Shown one piece after another: positions 21,344-42,528 of a stretch of 64,000 nt of DNA. The notes beneath the pieces were generated by a model, which was not told the origin of the DNA, searched no databases, and was given only the letters and a program-made list of their open reading frames with translations. The translations under genes were made by a program, and so were the position numbers. Each line of letters opens with the position of its first letter. Position 1 is the first letter of the stretch. Location of the stretch: the sequence record KY555144.1, one strand, 5' to 3'.

Positions 21344-24151
21344 TTACCCCTCACATGCCAAGCAGTCGGACGAGGCCGTCGGATTGAGGGCCAGCATCGC
21401 GGCCTCCTCGGCGGAGCCCTCGGTCACGGGCTCCTCGGCGAACTCGATCTTCTTGCGCTCGACCTTGGCGTTGGTGTTCTCGGCCCGCTTGGGGGTCGAC
21501 GAGCGCAGGTAGTAGAACGACTTGACGCCGGCGCCCTCGCCCCAGCCCAGGAAGTGGAGTTCCGAGAGGTACTCGGCGTCCGCGTCGTGAGGCACGAAGA
21601 CGTTCAGGGACTGGCCCTGACAGATCGACTTGGAGCGGTCGACCGCCAGGGTCACGACCCAACGCTGATCCATCTCGCGGGCGGTCCGGTAGACCTTCAG
21701 GAGATGCAGGCGCTCGGCTTCCGGCATGGTCACGCCGTGCTCGGCCAGGAACTCGGGCGTGAAGTGCTGGATCGAACCCTCGGCCGCGACGATCGACTTC
21801 CAGACCGCCTCGGTGTTCAGGCCCAGTTCGCCCAGGCGCTTCTTCAGCCAGCGGTTCTTGACGGCGAACGAGCCCGACAGGGTCTTGTGCAGGAAGGTGT
21901 TGGCCGGGATCGGCTCGATCGACGGCGAGGTGCCCCCGCAGAGGATCGAGGACGAGGCGTTGGGCGCCACGGCCAGCTTGTGGGCGAACCGCTCGCCCGT
22001 GCCTTCCATGTCCGGCGCCTCGCCGCGCTCCTTGCCCAGCAGCAGGGAAGCCGCGTCGGCCTGCTTGCGCATGTGGGCGAACAGTTCCAGGTTCAGCCGG
22101 CGGGCGGCGTGACTCTCGAACGGGATGTCCAGCATCTGGAGCAGCGAGTGGAAGCCGAGCAGGCCCAGGCCCACCGACCGTTCGCGCACGGCGCTGTAGG
22201 CGGCGCGGTGCATCTCGTCCGGCGCGTTGTCGATGAACACCTGGAGGCAGTTGTCCAGCATGCGCAGCAGGTCTTCGATGAAGGTCGGGTGATCCCGCCA
22301 CTCCGGCCACTTCTCGGCGTTGACGCTGGAGAGGCAGCAGACGGCGGTCCGCATCTTGCCGAAGATGTCGCGGCCCGAGCCCAGCATGATCTCCGAGCAG
22401 TTGCCCGTCAGATAGCCGTTGAAGACCAGACGGTGGCGCAGGGGCTCGGTCGCGCAGAAGACGTCAGCCTTGTGCGCGAGCGGATGGACGTCGGCGACCG
22501 TCGCCGCCAGGATCGAGGCCACCCCGATCGCGGCGTCGCGCGGCTCGATCGCGTGGGCCAGGACGATGCCGCGATCCGACAGATAGGCCACATCCCACTC
22601 GGCGAGCGAGAAGGCGCTGACCGTGTCGGTCAGGCGGATGCGCGGGTGCAGGCCGGACTCGATGGCCATGAGGCGCATCTGGCGGATCAGGTCGACGTCG
22701 GTCGAGCCCACGGTCAGCCAACGCACGCCGTCGATCTCGACCCACTCGCCGGCCGCGTCCAGGGCGCCGGCCAGCCACGTCAGGCGGCGTTCGACGGTCC
22801 AGGCGAATGGCACCACGCCGGGATTGATCACCTGCGGGTCAAAGCGCAGGGTCGTGCCGTGCTCGTCGCCTTCCAGGTTGGTCGACAGCGTCGACAGGCG
22901 CTTGAGCACCTCGCCCGGCAGGCTCGCAGGCACGAAGGCCGACAGCCGGTTTTTGTCGTCGAAGCCGGCGAAGGTCGTCCACCCGGCGGCATAGGCCTGC
23001 TCGATCGGCGGCGTCGCCTCGGCCAGCCCCTCGATCACCGGCGCCTGGGCCTTGGCCAGCACGGTCCCGAGCTTCAGTTCGCCGGCCCGCACCTCCACGC
23101 CGTCCTGGGTGTAGAACTTGTGGTAGGGGGTGCAGTCGAGATAGTCGCCGTCCTCGAACCAGACGCGCACCAGCGAGGCCTTCTCGTCGGTGGGGTTGGT
23201 CTGCTGGATCAGGACGCGGCTGAATTCCTCGCCGTTCCAGACGTCGTGGTATTCGCCTTTCAGGGCCTCGATCGGCAGGTGGCCGTTGCGGGTCAGGATT
23301 TCGGTCTCGCCGGTCACGCAGAGGTTCGACTGGCGGACCTTGAGGCCGAGCTTCTTCTGCGCCTCGGGGAAGTGGCGGTTGGAGGTGTCGATGAAGTGGA
23401 TGTAGGGCTCGCCCGTCTGCATCCGCGTCTCGATCAGCAGGCGCCACAGTTCGCGCGCCCGCTCAACGCGGATCACCTCGCCGGTCTTGGGCGAGCGCAG
23501 GGCGAACTCGGTGTCGTCGCGCACCGCGATCATGAACTCGTCGGTGACGTTGACGGCGTTGTGCAGGTTGGTGATCTTGCGGTTCTGGTCGCCGCCGGTA
23601 GGCTTGCGGGCCGTGATGAACTCGCGGATTTCCGGGTGGCTAATGTCCAGATAGACGGCGTTGGAGCCCCGGCGCGTGCCGCCTTGGCTGACGGCGAGAA
23701 TCAGGCGATCGTCCACCGCCATGAACGGGATCACGCCGGTCGACTGCGAACCCTTCGAGGTCTTCTCGCCCAGGCCGCGCAGGGCGCCGTAATAGGAGCC
23801 GATGCCGCCGCCCATCGACGAGAGCCAGATGACCTCGTCATAGTGCTCGGAGATCGACTCGCGGCTGTCCTCGATCGCGGTGAGGAAGCAGGAGATCGGC
23901 AGGCCGCGCGCGGACCCGCCGTTCGACAGCAGGGGCGTGGCGAACATGAACCAGAGGTTCGAGACATAGTCGTAGAGCCGCTGGCCGTGCTCGGCGTCAT
24001 CCGCGAAGGCCGCACTCGCGCGCGCGAAGGCCTCCTGGGGCGAGCTTTCCCCAGGCAGCAGATAGCGTTCACGGAGGGTCTGAAGGGTGAAGTCGTCGAG
24101 CAGGGCGTCGCGGGTGAGATCGATCTTGATTTCGGAGGGTGCGACAGCCAT
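21344..24151 (-). CDS. nrdA: Ribonucleotide reductase class I alpha subunit containing an intein
   Basis: FATPLLSNGG, PISCF, QSNL|C...N|CSEI, VAPNASSS, C-terminal CLACEG; start taken at the ATG at 24151. Confidence 0.93.
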   Translation of the reverse strand: MAVAPSEIKIDLTRDALLDDFTLQTLRERYLLPGESSPQEAFARASAAFADDAEHGQRLYDYVSNLWFMFATPLLSNGGSARGLPISCFLTAIEDSRESISEHYDEVIWLSSMGGGIGSYYGALRGLGEKTSKGSQSTGVIPFMAVDDRLILAVSQGGTRRGSNAVYLDISHPEIREFITARKPTGGDQNRKITNLHNAVNVTDEFMIAVRDDTEFALRSPKTGEVIRVERARELWRLLIETRMQTGEPYIHFIDTSNRHFPEAQKKLGLKVRQSNLCVTGETEILTRNGHLPIEALKGEYHDVWNGEEFSRVLIQQTNPTDEKASLVRVWFEDGDYLDCTPYHKFYTQDGVEVRAGELKLGTVLAKAQAPVIEGLAEATPPIEQAYAAGWTTFAGFDDKNRLSAFVPASLPGEVLKRLSTLSTNLEGDEHGTTLRFDPQVINPGVVPFAWTVERRLTWLAGALDAAGEWVEIDGVRWLTVGSTDVDLIRQMRLMAIESGLHPRIRLTDTVSAFSLAEWDVAYLSDRGIVLAHAIEPRDAAIGVASILAATVADVHPLAHKADVFCATEPLRHRLVFNGYLTGNCSEIMLGSGRDIFGKMRTAVCCLSSVNAEKWPEWRDHPTFIEDLLRMLDNCLQVFIDNAPDEMHRAAYSAVRERSVGLGLLGFHSLLQMLDIPFESHAARRLNLELFAHMRKQADAASLLLGKERGEAPDMEGTGERFAHKLAVAPNASSSILCGGTSPSIEPIPANTFLHKTLSGSFAVKNRWLKKRLGELGLNTEAVWKSIVAAEGSIQHFTPEFLAEHGVTMPEAERLHLLKVYRTAREMDQRWVVTLAVDRSKSICQGQSLNVFVPHDADAEYLSELHFLGWGEGAGVKSFYYLRSSTPKRAENTNAKVERKKIEFAEEPVTEGSAEEAAMLALNPTASSDCLACEG
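22400..23320 (-). mobile_element. Intein (307 aa) with degenerate LAGLIDADG domain, inserted at the catalytic Cys of NrdA
   Basis: Starts CVTGETEIL, ends HRLVFNGYLTGN before Cys+1; contains WLAGALDAAG block-E-like motif. Confidence 0.9.
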
Positions 24152-24257
24152 GGGGTCTCGTTCTCGCGTCGAGGCGCGATGCGTTAAAAAGCCCTGAGAA
24201 ATCAGGGCCTTAGATTGACAGCAAAGGATGGTTAAGATAGCCTGAGGGGTCCCGAAA

Positions 24258-24272
24258 GTCAAGATTCACGAC
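24258..24272 (-). promoter_or_regulatory. Recurring motif and promoter for nrdA
   Basis: Minus strand GTCGTGAATCTTGACT-N17-TATCTT; TTAACCAT at 24228-24235. Confidence 0.7.
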
Positions 24273-40040: not shown

Positions 40041-40913
40041 CCGATGGGCTGAGACTACACCCATCAGCAATCCCGCTTCGAGGATTATTCCCCAGGTGCG
40101 ACCCCAGGTATTCCCTCGACGTCCACCAGACCCCTTGCGGTAGTCCAGTCCGAGATCATCGCCGCCGTTCTTGCGCACCCCGAAGGGATTGCGGGTCTGG
40201 CGTTTGACCCATCATGGCGAACTACTCGACAGTTCCTTCCCCGCTGGGCTTGCGACCCACTCACCGGCGCTAACCGGCTGACGAAGCTCTTCCTATCGAC
40301 ACCTCGCGGGCTTGCGACCCTTGAGATGACTCCGTTACCCGAAGGCCGGAGCATTTGGCGACTTACGTCCGCCACTGGACCAGTCTTTGCGTTTTTCATC
40401 GAAGCGGGGATTGAACCCGCGACCGACAGCTTAAGAGGCTGTTGCACTACCACTGTGCTATTCGCAAACCCACCAAGACGTGCTGGTCCAGTTGTTCCCA
40501 GAGCTTTTGACCCCGGAAATGCAACACGCCTCATATCTTTCGCCTTGCGGGCTACTCGACTGCTCTTCAGGACTCCGTCTCCCCCAACCTTTCGGCCAGG
40601 ATGCCCAGCACCCCTCGAACTGAAGCAAAGCTCTTCACCGCGAAGTGTCGAACCCTGCAACCCAAACGGTTATCCGTACTCCCTAGACACGCTTGCACGG
40701 GATAGTCCGCTTGCGACGGACTGGCGGTTAAAGCCTCGGAGTTACCCCGGCCCCGCCTTGTCTCCCACGGTCTTCAGGTCTATCCCCTTTTGCAAGAGGC
40801 GGCCAGCTTCCCAGCCCGGACCCGTCGGCTTCCTCTGTCCTCTTGCGAGGTCGGGCGGCCTATGGGAGACCGTCCCTGTCACCCCGTCGCCGGGGCTTTC
40901 GTCAGAAGCGACG
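40041..40913 (-). ncRNA. GOLLD-like giant structured RNA (~870 nt)
   Basis: Promoter TTGACG-N15-GCTAGA upstream and terminator downstream; about ten GCAA tetraloop hairpins plus GAAA/UUCG loops on the minus strand; central tRNA-like domain; segments resembling recalled GOLLD consensus. Confidence 0.6.
40396..40467 (-). tRNA. tRNA-Lys(CTT)-like domain with defective acceptor stem, embedded in the GOLLD-like RNA
   Basis: Good D-arm, ACAGC-CT-CTT-AA-GCTGT anticodon arm, GCGGG-TTCAATC-CCCGC T-arm; only 4 Watson-Crick acceptor pairs and no CCA. Confidence 0.7.
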
Positions 40914-40920
40914 ATGACGT

Positions 40921-41030
40921 TCTAGCGACAGCCCACGTCGTCGTCAACGACTTTTTCCGTCTCGATGTCGAATTTTTTCGACAGTCGTGGATGACGACAG
41001 TGCTTGACATTCTCGTAAGCCCATGCTAGG
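40921..41030. promoter_or_regulatory. Divergent Caulobacter-type sigma70 promoters (GOLLD-like RNA on -, tmRNA on +)
   Basis: Minus: TTGACG (40942-40947)-N15-GCTAGA. Plus: TTGACA (41004-41009)-N15-GCTAGG. Confidence 0.75.
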
Positions 41031-41036
41031 TGTCGG

Positions 41037-41406
41037 AAATCGTTGTAATTCGGACAACGGAACTGGCGGCAAGACAGGGGTGCGAATCCCCTCGCCTCCA
41101 CCATCGACGCCCGGCGCTGGGAGTACGCGACTCCTGGGCAGGGAGTGTTACCCTGGCGGGCTGCGGCCCGAGCCAAAGGTAGCCGGGCGTCGTTGATGGG
41201 GGCGACTAGCTTTCGATTGGCGCTCGGGACTGAAAGACGCAACGGTGGGTGACCTCCACATCGGCTTGCCGGTGATCGGGTCAGGCAACAGTAAATGTCG
41301 CCGACAATGACAACGACGTCGTGGCTTTCGCCTCGGCTCGTGAAGCCATCGCCGCCTAATAAGCGGTAGAGGAGCCCGCCGGGAGCTTGGCAACAGAATC
41401 CCGGCA
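41037..41406 (+). ncRNA. ssrA: Two-piece circularly permuted tmRNA (alphaproteobacterial type)
   Basis: Acceptor piece ends CGCCTCC-A-CCA at 41103; coding piece starts GGGGGCG at 41198, giving a 7-bp stem with G3-U70; tag frame (V)ADNDNDVVAFASAREAIAA followed by two stops (41297-41362); GGCAACAGAA near the 3' end. Confidence 0.9.
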
Positions 41407-41540
41407 ACCCCCTTTCGCAGGCGGGAACACCAACAGGCGATCTGTCGGGCGACCGATTTCCGATCCGTGTTCCCGTCTTCGAAAGGTGGTCAGGCCTACC
41501 CTCTTGGTGTGCTATCCAAGGGTCTGGCCACTTTACAGAA

Positions 41541-41619
41541 CGCGGGGTAGAGGAGTCCGGTTGTCCTCGTCTGGCTCATAACCAGGAGATCGTGGGTTCA
41601 AATCCCACTCCCGCTCCCA
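41541..41619 (+). tRNA. tRNA-Met(CAT), partly initiator-like
   Basis: C1xU72 mismatch, CT-CAT-AA loop, GTGGG-TTCAAAT-CCCAC T-arm, encoded CCA; only two G-C pairs next to the anticodon loop. Confidence 0.85.
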
Positions 41620-41900
41620 ATGCGAACGCCGGCTGTTGAGAACGACGGCGTGACAAGCTCGGAGAGAACGAGCACTCCAGTCCGGGGTATGAGGCCGGAC
41701 TAGCGGACGCCGTAGCGATTGCAGGCGTGACACCCGGAGATAGCGGGACCGGCTTTCCGAGCCGCATGCTCGGCGCGTAAGACCGCAGGCCTCGGCCATC
41801 GGGCAGTGTCAGGGGATGAGGCTAGTCCTCGGCTAACCACCTAGCGGTGAAGCTAGGGCATGCGGTTCGGAAAGCTGGGTTCGCGGTTCGTCCGCTACGA
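41620..41900 (+). ncRNA. Structured RNA domain of unknown class, directly 5' of the permuted tRNA-like element
   Basis: Stems ACGCCG/CGGCGT, GCTCG/CGAGC, AGTCCGG/CCGGACT, CCTAGC/GCTAGG and long-range CCGCATGC/GCATGCGG. Confidence 0.5.
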
Positions 41901-41977
41901 GATGGAGATGTCGCCGGTTCGAGTCCGGCAGGTCCCCCAAAAGGAGGCCTTAGCTCAGTCGGTAGAGCGCTCCTATC
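41901..41977 (+). ncRNA. Circularly permuted tRNA-like element (3' half upstream of 5' half)
   Basis: T-arm and acceptor 3' strand with CCA at 41913-41939, then acceptor 5' strand and D-arm at 41943-41969; acceptor and anticodon stems both pair between the halves. Confidence 0.55.
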
Positions 41978-41985
41978 CCACCTTT

Positions 41986-42070
41986 GGTACGGTGGCTCGA
42001 CAGGTAAGGCATCGGCCTCATAAGCCGAGGGTTCGTCCCAATCCTGGTTCAAATCCAGGTCGTACCTCCA
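41986..42070 (+). tRNA. tRNA with CAT anticodon (Met or Ile2), long variable arm and U73
   Basis: GGTACGG/TCGTACC acceptor, TCGGC-CT-CAT-AA-GCCGA, 14-nt variable region, CCTGG-TTCAAAT-CCAGG, encoded CCA. Confidence 0.88.
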
Positions 42071-42144: not shown

Positions 42145-42175
42145 AAGCCCCCGGAGCTTCGCTTCGGGGGCTTTT
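42145..42175. terminator. Intrinsic terminator closing the tmRNA/tRNA transcript
   Basis: AAGCCCCC...GGGGGCTT-TT. Confidence 0.8.
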
Positions 42176-42528
42176 CAGTTCTTGACCACCCGCAGGCGCC
42201 GGGCCTCGATGGCGCGCTCCTCCGCCGCCACGCGCGAGACGTCTTGCAGGTGCGCCTTGGCGATCAGGTCGGGCGCGCCCACGGCCCGGAAGGGCACCTT
42301 GACGGAGAGGTCGACATAGCGCCGCAAGAGAGGCTCGAATTCCAGACCCCGCGCCTGGGCGATCCGCGACAATGCGCCGGCGACGATCGCCACGACCAGG
42401 ACGTTGGTCGGGGTCTCCTTGGTCAGGGTCCAGATGCCCGGTATCGATTGTCCAGGATGGAGTTCCTGCCGCGACACGTCATCGGCGGCGGCGCGGAAGA
42501 GGTTCTCGTAAGGGACGTTTTCGAGCAT
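42175..42528 (-). CDS. Hypothetical protein (117 aa)
   Basis: Normal codon usage; converges on the RNA island terminator. Confidence 0.6.
   Translation of the reverse strand: MLENVPYENLFRAAADDVSRQELHPGQSIPGIWTLTKETPTNVLVVAIVAGALSRIAQARGLEFEPLLRRYVDLSVKVPFRAVGAPDLIAKAHLQDVSRVAAEERAIEARRLRVVKN

Follow-up and report, generated by a model that had tools for sequence, protein, structure and literature searches.

The defining trait of Y RNAs is that they partner with Ro. Chen et al. (2014; PMC4201824) found the tRNA-like domain of the YrlA type in 254 bacteria and 22 phages, reported its modification by TruB and DusA, and warned that the YrlA model artefactually matches tRNA–tRNA junctions; the domain was later solved by crystallography, and a free CCA end is absent from it (Wang et al., 2018; bioRxiv 10.1101/312249). 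In the Rfam model of YrlA (RF02553), this domain corresponds to positions 23–85 and comprises a T arm, a closed acceptor-like stem, UA, a D arm, and a closing stem. Here we analyzed positions 41620–41985 (plus strand) of a 64,000-nt stretch of DNA, hereafter the window, from Caulobacter phage Ccr5 (KY555144.1), a phiCbK-like jumbo siphovirus of the genus Shapirovirus (Dolichocephalovirinae) with a tRNA-rich genome of 218,729 bp (27 tRNAs). The 751 nt enclosing the element match the Ccr5 record at 100% identity. The 3' part of this element is a YrlA-type tRNA mimic without a Ro partner, fused to another RNA. An original prediction, made from the sequence alone, had regarded it as a possible new class with no known bacterial or phage example; the same architecture defines the YrlA tRNA-like domain, so that the permuted, anticodon-loop-free tRNA fold is already established in bacteria and phages, and the Ro-less, fused form is what differs.

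The element lies in an RNA-gene island with the plus-strand order permuted transfer-messenger RNA (tmRNA), tRNA-fMet, the 366-nt interval, a tRNA with a CAU anticodon, and a terminator-like hairpin. It exactly fills the gap between the tRNAs called by ARAGORN at 41541–41619 and 41986–42070, and tRNA-processing sites flank it. Its tRNA-like module (41901–41977) begins with the closing stem and continues with the T arm, the closed acceptor hairpin, and the D arm. GATGGAG (41901–41907), the 5' strand of the closing stem, occupies the position of a tRNA anticodon stem and pairs with 41970–41977, leaving U41974 bulged. It is followed by AUGUC (41908–41912), the equivalent of a variable region (A44, G46, and C48, the last able to form a Levitt pair with G15), and by the T arm GCCGG-UUCGAGU-CCGGC (41913–41929), which is covered by the Rfam YrlA alignment and is identical in the modules of the Caulobacter phages CcrColossus and CcrPW (hereafter Colossus and PW). 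The closed "acceptor" hairpin, AGGUCCCC-CAAAA-GGAGGCCU (41930–41950), has eight positions with one C–A mismatch and a 5-nt loop (41938–41942); its DNA letters are AGGTCCC (41930–41936), CCA (41937–41939), AAA (41940–41942), and GGAGGCCT (41943–41950), and its position and spacing match those of YrlA and of a module in mycobacteriophage MrMagoo. The segment 41951–41969 contains U8–A9 (41951–41952), a YrlA-consensus D arm, GCUC-AGUCGGUA-GAGC (41953–41968; GCTC-AGTCGGTA-GAGC in DNA), and G26 (41969). The 3' strand of the closing stem, CUCC(U)AUC (41970–41977; DNA CTCCTATC), leads into an 8-nt tail, CCACCTTT (41978–41985), that doubles as the 5' leader of the following tRNA. A sequence check located every motif listed in the original prediction at its given coordinates.

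When 41899–41979 was folded alone, the minimum-energy structure was a permuted cloverleaf four-way junction with a 7-bp closing stem containing one bulged U. The nucleotides of the canonical tRNA tertiary contacts are complete (U8:A14, G15:C48, G18/G19 with U55/C56, and U54:A58), and A21, G26:A44, G46, and G53:C61 are also present. Neither ARAGORN nor Rfam called a tRNA at 41901–41977, and the missing outer tRNA halves are not present.

The two halves pair at 6 of 7 acceptor positions (7 of 8 with G-1:C73) and in a closing stem of 4 + 3 bp around the bulged U. For comparison, we took 43 real tRNAs from the Ccr5 and MrMagoo arrays and combined each 3' half with every other 5' half, giving 1,806 ordered pairs. 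Six of seven acceptor pairs were reached by 42 of these combinations and five of five anticodon-stem pairs by 34, with a single combination reaching both; among 41 truly adjacent tRNA junctions, none reached 6/7 in the acceptor. The cross-half pairing of the module is therefore non-random and far beyond chance. Together with the minimum-energy fold, these controls confirm the predicted single tRNA-shaped fold in permuted order, with paired acceptor and anticodon stems and no anticodon loop. An ordinary tandem tRNA junction was rejected: complete flanking halves are lacking, and the cross-pairing of 6/7 plus 7 bp compares with a mode of 3–4/7 at real junctions.

A low-threshold Rfam scan (751-nt search) aligned 41905–41972 to YrlA positions 23–85 with 29.7 bits (E = 2.7e-4), short of the YrlA gathering score of 69 bits. 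We rejected this score as proof of YrlA membership, with a real tRNA-Pro/tRNA-Pro junction as the control (25.3 bits). Because the score is sub-threshold and a real junction comes this close, the YrlA-type assignment rests on architecture and pairing statistics. The cmscan alignment and the sequence show the near-invariant T and D stem-loops in the YrlA order (T, acceptor-like stem-loop, D). The acceptor hairpin AGGUCCCC/GGAGGCCU is closed, with 7 of 8 positions paired and a CAAAA loop, the tRNA tertiary-interaction nucleotides include the 15:48 Levitt pair, and the module does not overlap tandem tRNA genes, the overlap that Chen et al. use as an exclusion rule. A blastn search of 50,697 phage records with the module returned mostly tRNA–tRNA junctions, plus unannotated DNA in Xanthomonas phage Tabio. 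The Tabio match is a YrlA-like RNA scoring 37 bits (a second copy scores 52 bits), and a protein with TROVE and vWA_Ro60 domains is encoded directly downstream. The module thus resembles in sequence a genuine, Ro-linked phage Y RNA.

Membership of YrlA calls for a Ro60/TROVE gene within 4 kb on the same strand, but no TROVE domain was detected in 20 window proteins, and comparison of the whole Ccr5 genome with TROVE-type and DUF2828-type Ro-like proteins gave nothing at E ≤ 1. No Shapirovirus or Poindextervirus record contains a TROVE or DUF2828 gene; in a tblastn search with the Tabio and Colossus Ro queries (E ≤ 10), the only Caulobacter-phage matches were Colossus and PW (four records, GenBank and RefSeq copies). 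The Ro-binding features of a Y RNA are likewise missing from the element: YrlA model positions 1–22 and 86–114, the Ro-binding stem, were unmatched by the module, and the motif GNCGAAN0-1G, a putative Ro contact near the 5' end of YrlA, does not occur in 41620–41985, where the nearest sequence, UGCGAACG (41621–41628), is not kept in CcrRogue (Rogue) or Colossus.

The remainder of the element is a separate structured RNA supported by covariation. This domain (41620–41881, ~260 nt) has a core of ~245–260 nt that was found in 30 Caulobacter-phage records; every phiCbK-like phage carries it, placed between tRNA-fMet and a second tRNA. Its helices are P1 (41626–41631/41646–41651), P2 (41657–41661/41669–41673), P3 (41679–41685/41695–41701), P4 (41707–41711/41724–41728), P5 (41733–41736/41744–41747), and the long P6 (41747–41771/41856–41881; 25–28 bp), and there is an apex hairpin at 41808–41833. 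In an alignment of seven phages, the structure comprised 65 pairs; the fraction of paired cells was 96.7%, and in 8 pairs both sides had changed, a count that was matched by none of 500 column shuffles; sliding the partners by 1–3 columns gave at most 2. A unit of hairpin, GUGACA, and second hairpin, the latter with a GGAGA-type loop, occurs twice in the domain, the GUGACA linkers following P1 and P4, and the apical hairpin has an invariant AUGAGGCUAGU loop that includes a CUAG palindrome. No Rfam family matched the domain even at E ≤ 10, where microRNA-model noise alone appeared. In a pattern scan of IMG/VR viral contigs, all domain copies were from cultured isolates, and the metagenome scan gave three chance matches inside coding sequence, with no tRNAs. 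A protein-coding interpretation of the interval was rejected, as there is no open reading frame with high third-position GC and relatives differ by indels and compensatory pairs. The domain appears to be a previously undescribed structured RNA of narrow distribution, and in the data scanned the family appears confined to Caulobacter Dolichocephalovirinae. Separately, the apical hairpin GUCAGGGGAUGAGGCUAGUCCYCGGC (41806–41833) recurs in the excised segment of the permuted tmRNA of the Brevundimonas phage Bajun (segment L014, 1514–1540); it looks like a portable RNA motif, possibly one making a loop-loop contact. The PW region gave a weak rsmX match (27 bits, E = 0.15).

Domain and module are connected by a 19-nt linker (41882–41900) containing the small hairpin GCGG-UUCGU-CCGC (41884–41896). 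The domain is linked solely to the 5' strand of the closing stem, and the 3' strand continues through the 8-nt tail into the next tRNA. The domain is therefore not inserted "in" the anticodon loop. The predicted structured domain at this site is a real, covarying RNA, but one joined to a single strand of the closing stem and separable from the module. A 9-nt stretch of perfect complementarity between UAGCGGACG (41701–41709) and the linker sequence CGUCCGCUA (41890–41898) would join domain and linker. GCGAAC/GUUCGC occur at comparable places in Colossus and PW, a possible compensatory change. This long-range pairing, which competes with the covariation-supported P4 and with the local linker hairpin, is suggestive.

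Comparison of relatives revealed that the order tmRNA, tRNA-fMet, spacer, and tRNA(CAU) is kept in all of them, with a spacer of 243–498 nt. The module is present in 13 records (phiCbK, Karma, Ccr5, Ccr32, Ccr34, S2L, Ccr10, Ccr2, Ccr29, and RBC57 types) with 100% identity over 96 nt. It is absent from BL57, CcrBL10, Rogue, and RBC63, in which the domain directly adjoins the next tRNA, and BL64, RBC8, and RBC11 show reduced match coverage like the module-less phages. Magneto and Swift carry in its place an insert of 148 nt that is unrelated, well folded (z = -2.2; segment L003, 1432–1579 in Magneto), and without an Rfam match. Since the domain occurs without the module, the two are separable: the module is an optional 3' add-on, and RNA modules appear to be exchanged at the 3' end of the domain. 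In Colossus and PW, the module is divergent: the T arm is that of Ccr5, the acceptor-like stem has 9 bp, and the D-like arm differs. Covariation in relatives, which had been put forward as a check, was seen as a compensatory C–G to A–U change in the acceptor-like stem between Colossus and PW, but the module is invariant within its 13 carrier records.

Modules of the same design were also found in other phages. The MrMagoo locus has the order tRNA-Trp, tmRNA, tRNA-Asn, a partial YrlA module, ~345 nt, GOLLD (182 bits), and a tRNA array; its module aligned to YrlA positions 23–85 (27 bits), with 7/7 acceptor pairs, 5/5 closing-stem pairs, and stem sequences that all differ from those of Ccr5. No Ro was annotated or detected in MrMagoo. 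The relatives thus do not present unrelated, decayed tRNA fragments: MrMagoo, Colossus, and PW keep both stems in entirely different sequences. An IMG/VR scan with the pattern T loop, 22–26 nt, D arm gave at least 116 matches. Among the matches listed, at least 66 were real junctions of tandem tRNAs, for which the cross-pairing mode was 4/7, and at least 39 were stand-alone, with no tRNA called on either side and almost all with closed acceptor hairpins of 6–7/7. The spacing of 24 nt from T loop to D arm is common to the Ccr5 module, the stand-alone modules of unrelated phages, and Ro-linked YrlAs. Of 38 stand-alone modules examined among those listed, 14 had a TROVE Ro within ~2 kb on the same strand and 24 had no Ro detectable in the fetched DNA, many of the latter lying in tRNA arrays a few nt from the next tRNA. 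At 2 of these 24 loci, a DUF2828+DUF7788 protein is encoded just downstream on the same strand (L084, 5002–6570, minus strand; L114, 11974–13533, plus strand). This family, often annotated as "Ro-like RNA binding protein", occurs in 712 phage records and may be a second partner class for YrlA-type RNAs. The YrlA gathering score was reached at none of 12 Ro-less loci scanned. The Ro-less loci include one array with tmRNA and one with ROOL (282 bits; L056, 5626–6308, with the module at ~1043; uncultured phage).

We consider, with a probability of roughly 0.6, that 41620–41985 encodes one ~366-nt non-coding RNA composed of the ~260-nt core and a YrlA-type tRNA mimic acting as its 3' cap or handle. 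The tmRNA, the tRNAs, and this RNA would be co-transcribed, as tRNA-fMet and the domain lie too close together to accommodate a promoter, and the last tRNA is followed by a terminator-like hairpin. The 366-nt RNA would then be freed by the enzymes that process the tRNAs on either side, with the RNase P cut at 41985/41986 setting its 3' end; in Rogue-type phages, the domain itself directly precedes the same tRNA. As a tRNA-shaped 3' cap, the module may shield the 3' end from exonucleases, and/or it may recruit tRNA-recognizing host factors (TruB, Dus, RNase P, or the CCA-adding enzyme), in either case without Ro. A protective or recruiting role for the YrlA tRNA fold has been discussed previously (PMC4201824; bioRxiv 10.1101/312249). 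The module is probably neither a decoding nor an aminoacylated tRNA.

Several observations weigh against this interpretation. The YrlA model gives a genuine Ccr5 tRNA-Pro/tRNA-Pro junction 25.3 bits, and the minimum-energy fold of the full 366 nt favours the pairing of 41701–41709 with 41890–41898, which breaks part of the module. Because all phages with the module carry the same sequence, it offers no within-lineage covariation, and its absence from close relatives marks it as dispensable. The RNA is a prediction from sequence.

A different fate of the module, doubtful in our judgment, would be maturation into a two-piece RNA: RNase P would cut the acceptor loop at ~41942/41943, a CCA end would be exposed or added, and pieces of ~320 nt and 43 nt would be held together by the acceptor and closing stems, to be aminoacylated or to act as an anticodon-less decoy. 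The precedent is the M. smegmatis YrlA, the sole YrlA with a 7-bp acceptor stem, which RNase P cuts both in vitro and in vivo and to which CCA is added (PMC4201824). The Ccr5 acceptor stem has 7–8 bp, that of MrMagoo, an M. smegmatis phage, is a perfect 7 bp, and the Ccr5 loop begins with C-C-A. However, no cleavage occurs in S. Typhimurium YrlA or D. radiodurans Yrn1 (PMC4201824), and a free CCA end is missing from the solved YrlA domain (bioRxiv 10.1101/312249). The 7-bp acceptor-like stem, the feature that Chen et al. tie to RNase P cleavage, is shared with M. smegmatis YrlA, for which cleavage and CCA addition were demonstrated, but the Ccr5 stem has an A–C mismatch and an extra G–C pair, making cleavage here plausible only; by this analogy, RNase P might cut the Ccr5 acceptor loop, an outcome that we consider possible rather than expected. 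The letters CCA at 41937–41939, which the original prediction had placed at the end of the 3' half, are present, but no register offers 7 bp, a discriminator base, and CCA, and the sequence is not kept in the loops of MrMagoo, Colossus, PW, or Tabio. A better interpretation is C73 paired with G-1, followed by the start of the CAAAA loop. The loop itself, only 5 nt long, is not conserved (UGAAAAU in MrMagoo, GACUAGGAAA in Colossus, CAAAA in Ccr5). The acceptor pairs include G3:C70 and G4:U69, with an A2–C71 mismatch and neither G3:U70 nor any other recognizable identity set. Because of the missing discriminator+CCA register, the lack of G3:U70, the mismatch, and the non-conserved loops, the suggestion of an aminoacylatable RNA was not upheld, and charging of the Ccr5 module seems most improbable.

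Less probable still is a remnant of a tandem-duplicated tRNA junction whose outer halves were deleted, so that the remaining halves pair through common tRNA descent. The genome is tRNA-rich, the module is absent or replaced in close relatives and lacks sequence variation that could show selection, and the score of the real tRNA-Pro/tRNA-Pro junction, an artefact of the kind flagged by Chen et al. (PMC4201824), would fit such an origin. A recent tRNA duplication was, however, rejected, as neither half closely copies any of the 27 Ccr5 tRNAs (best local scores 15–22 of 35–39, driven by universal D/T bases). The acceptor 3' strand, unlike those of the phage's real tRNAs, has no discriminator+CCA, and the tertiary-contact nucleotides are all intact. 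The stand-alone design with its 24-nt spacing recurs in unrelated phages and in Ro-linked YrlAs, and this recurrence argues for selection of the module.

It is very unlikely that the module is a canonical Y RNA served in trans by Ro from the host or a co-infecting Colossus-type phage, tethering Ro to an exoribonuclease for structured-RNA decay: its sequence and architecture resemble Ro-linked phage YrlAs, the related Colossus and PW have a Ro gene that is directly preceded by YrlA-like RNAs (in Colossus, three matches elsewhere in the genome, one overlapping an annotated tRNA-Gln), and a bacterial genome scan with the Colossus Ro found relatives in Asticcacaulis (60–61% identity, Caulobacterales) and Hyphomonadaceae, but the Ro gene, the motif GNCGAAN0-1G, and a stem for Ro binding are all missing as described above, and no Caulobacter was among the best 80 relatives in that scan, which reaches close relatives only.

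We tentatively propose that Ro-independent YrlA-type mimics may be widespread unannotated accessory modules of phage RNA islands, i.e., tRNA arrays with tmRNA, GOLLD, or ROOL, a generalization to which we give a low probability. Such modules go unannotated because they are sub-threshold in Rfam and resemble tRNA junctions. Processing like that of tRNAs, with RNase P cleavage and added CCA, could turn them into two-piece RNAs with CCA ends; they could instead be anticodon-less decoys or sensors in a conflict over tRNA cleavage and repair, an idea suggested by the fact that both complete Ro-less genomes with a module encode RtcB (45% identical; record positions 136376–137608, minus strand, in Ccr5; L139, 1093–2319, in MrMagoo). 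In phiCbK-type phages, the module would confer such an activity on a new 260-nt structured RNA. The Salmonella rsr-yrlBA-rtcBA operon links RtcB with Ro and YrlA, and RtcB is common in tRNA-rich phages; the co-occurrence may recall that operon but is only a lead. A literature search found no paper linking GOLLD, Caulobacter phages, and tRNA-like modules.

The RNA cluster that encloses the element begins with the permuted (two-piece) tmRNA gene (41011–41450, plus strand; ARAGORN tmRNA with tag peptide; Rfam tmRNA_permuted, 71.9 bits), which is kept in all relatives. The tRNA-fMet (CAU; 41541–41619, plus strand; ARAGORN; Rfam tRNA, 48.4 bits) has an encoded CCA, and its 3' end abuts the start of the domain. 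The tRNA at 41986–42070 (plus strand; ARAGORN; Rfam tRNA, 47.4 bits) has a CAU anticodon and a long variable arm, and the unit of tmRNA, tRNAs, and domain ends with the terminator-like hairpin and U-run at 42147–42176 (plus strand), the core of which was found by a terminator scan. This second "tRNA-Met" combines its CAU anticodon with a 15-nt variable arm and a 3-bp D stem, resembling class II tRNAs (Leu/Ser/Tyr); it is kept in all relatives, Bajun included, and is a candidate for decoding Met, Ile via lysidine, or another amino acid. The GenBank coordinates of tRNA26 and tRNA27 (both tRNA-Met) sit 11 nt downstream of the ARAGORN/Rfam positions, the Ccr10 record is shifted likewise, and the RBC57 and Colossus records have "hypothetical proteins" annotated across the structured RNA.

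On the minus strand, the island carries tRNA-Cys and, divergently beside the tmRNA operon, a GOLLD RNA (40046–40532; Rfam 171 bits, above threshold) with tRNA-Lys (40395–40468) embedded in its variable region; the GenBank record has no annotation for it, and the copy in Bajun is weaker (104 bits). Gaps in the 23-tRNA array of Ccr5 contain unannotated tRNA-Sec-like matches of 44 and 22.7 bits (threshold 47; segment L010, 38265–38347 and 39657–39737), possibly extra odd tRNAs or tRNA-like elements. Among the window proteins, Pfam matched phiJL001/gene transfer agent (GTA)-type tail proteins, ribonucleotide reductase, family A DNA polymerase, and ThyX, in keeping with a phiCbK-like siphovirus. 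In the large subunit of ribonucleotide reductase (21344–24262, minus strand), the barrel domain lies in two stretches with a weak intein-splicing match between them, a possible intein.

A structurally complete YrlA-type mimic in a fully sequenced Ro-less model phage of the phiCbK group suggests that the tRNA-like module has a function of its own, which would fit the observation by Chen et al. and Wang et al. that the D and T stems show unexplained conservation. The ~260-nt domain adds to the poorly understood large phage non-coding RNAs; it would be co-transcribed with tmRNA and an initiator tRNA, and it adjoins GOLLD. Natural variants with the module (Karma, phiCbK, and Ccr5), with the insert (Magneto and Swift), and without either (Rogue) make the function of the module directly testable in a tractable, non-pathogenic host. 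Standard annotation overlooks stand-alone modules, which can be mistaken for tandem tRNA junctions.

Among known systems, the permuted tRNA genes of Cyanidioschyzon merolae and some archaea likewise encode the 3' half upstream of the 5' half, but they pass through a circular intermediate to ordinary tRNAs with an intact anticodon loop, whereas the anticodon-side stem of Ccr5 opens into a 260-nt RNA and an 8-nt free tail instead of a closed 7-nt loop. The mascRNA of MALAT1/MEN-beta is, like the module, a tRNA-shaped 3' element of a larger non-coding RNA that is seen by tRNA-processing enzymes, and a functional analogy is possible; it differs in being eukaryotic, unpermuted, and cut off by RNase P at its 5' side. 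The two-piece tmRNA of alphaproteobacteria and phages, present 500 nt upstream, shares the permuted order in which the T arm and 3' acceptor strand precede the 5' acceptor strand, and it is matured by tRNA-processing enzymes. The predicted likeness to this RNA holds for the order, but there are differences: the two-piece tmRNA has a long excised intervening segment, G3:U70 as its alanine identity pair, a discriminator+CCA that is encoded, and a tag frame, all missing from the module, it lacks a true D arm and carries its large domain on the opposite piece, and the ARAGORN and Rfam tmRNA models called 41011–41450 only, not the module. YrlA (RF02553) shares with the module the order of closing stem, variable region, T arm, closed "acceptor" stem-loop, UA, D arm, and closing stem, a near-consensus D arm (UAGCUCAGUCGGUAGAGC) and T loop, the Levitt pair, a kinked or bulged closing stem, and phage-encoded examples. 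Unlike YrlA, the Ccr5 module has neither a Ro60/TROVE nor a DUF2828 gene in its genome, and it lacks both the motif GNCGAAN0-1G and a terminal stem for Ro binding. It scores 29.7 bits, with the gathering score at 69, and is fused to the 3' side of a 260-nt structured RNA, between the tRNA genes of a tmRNA operon.

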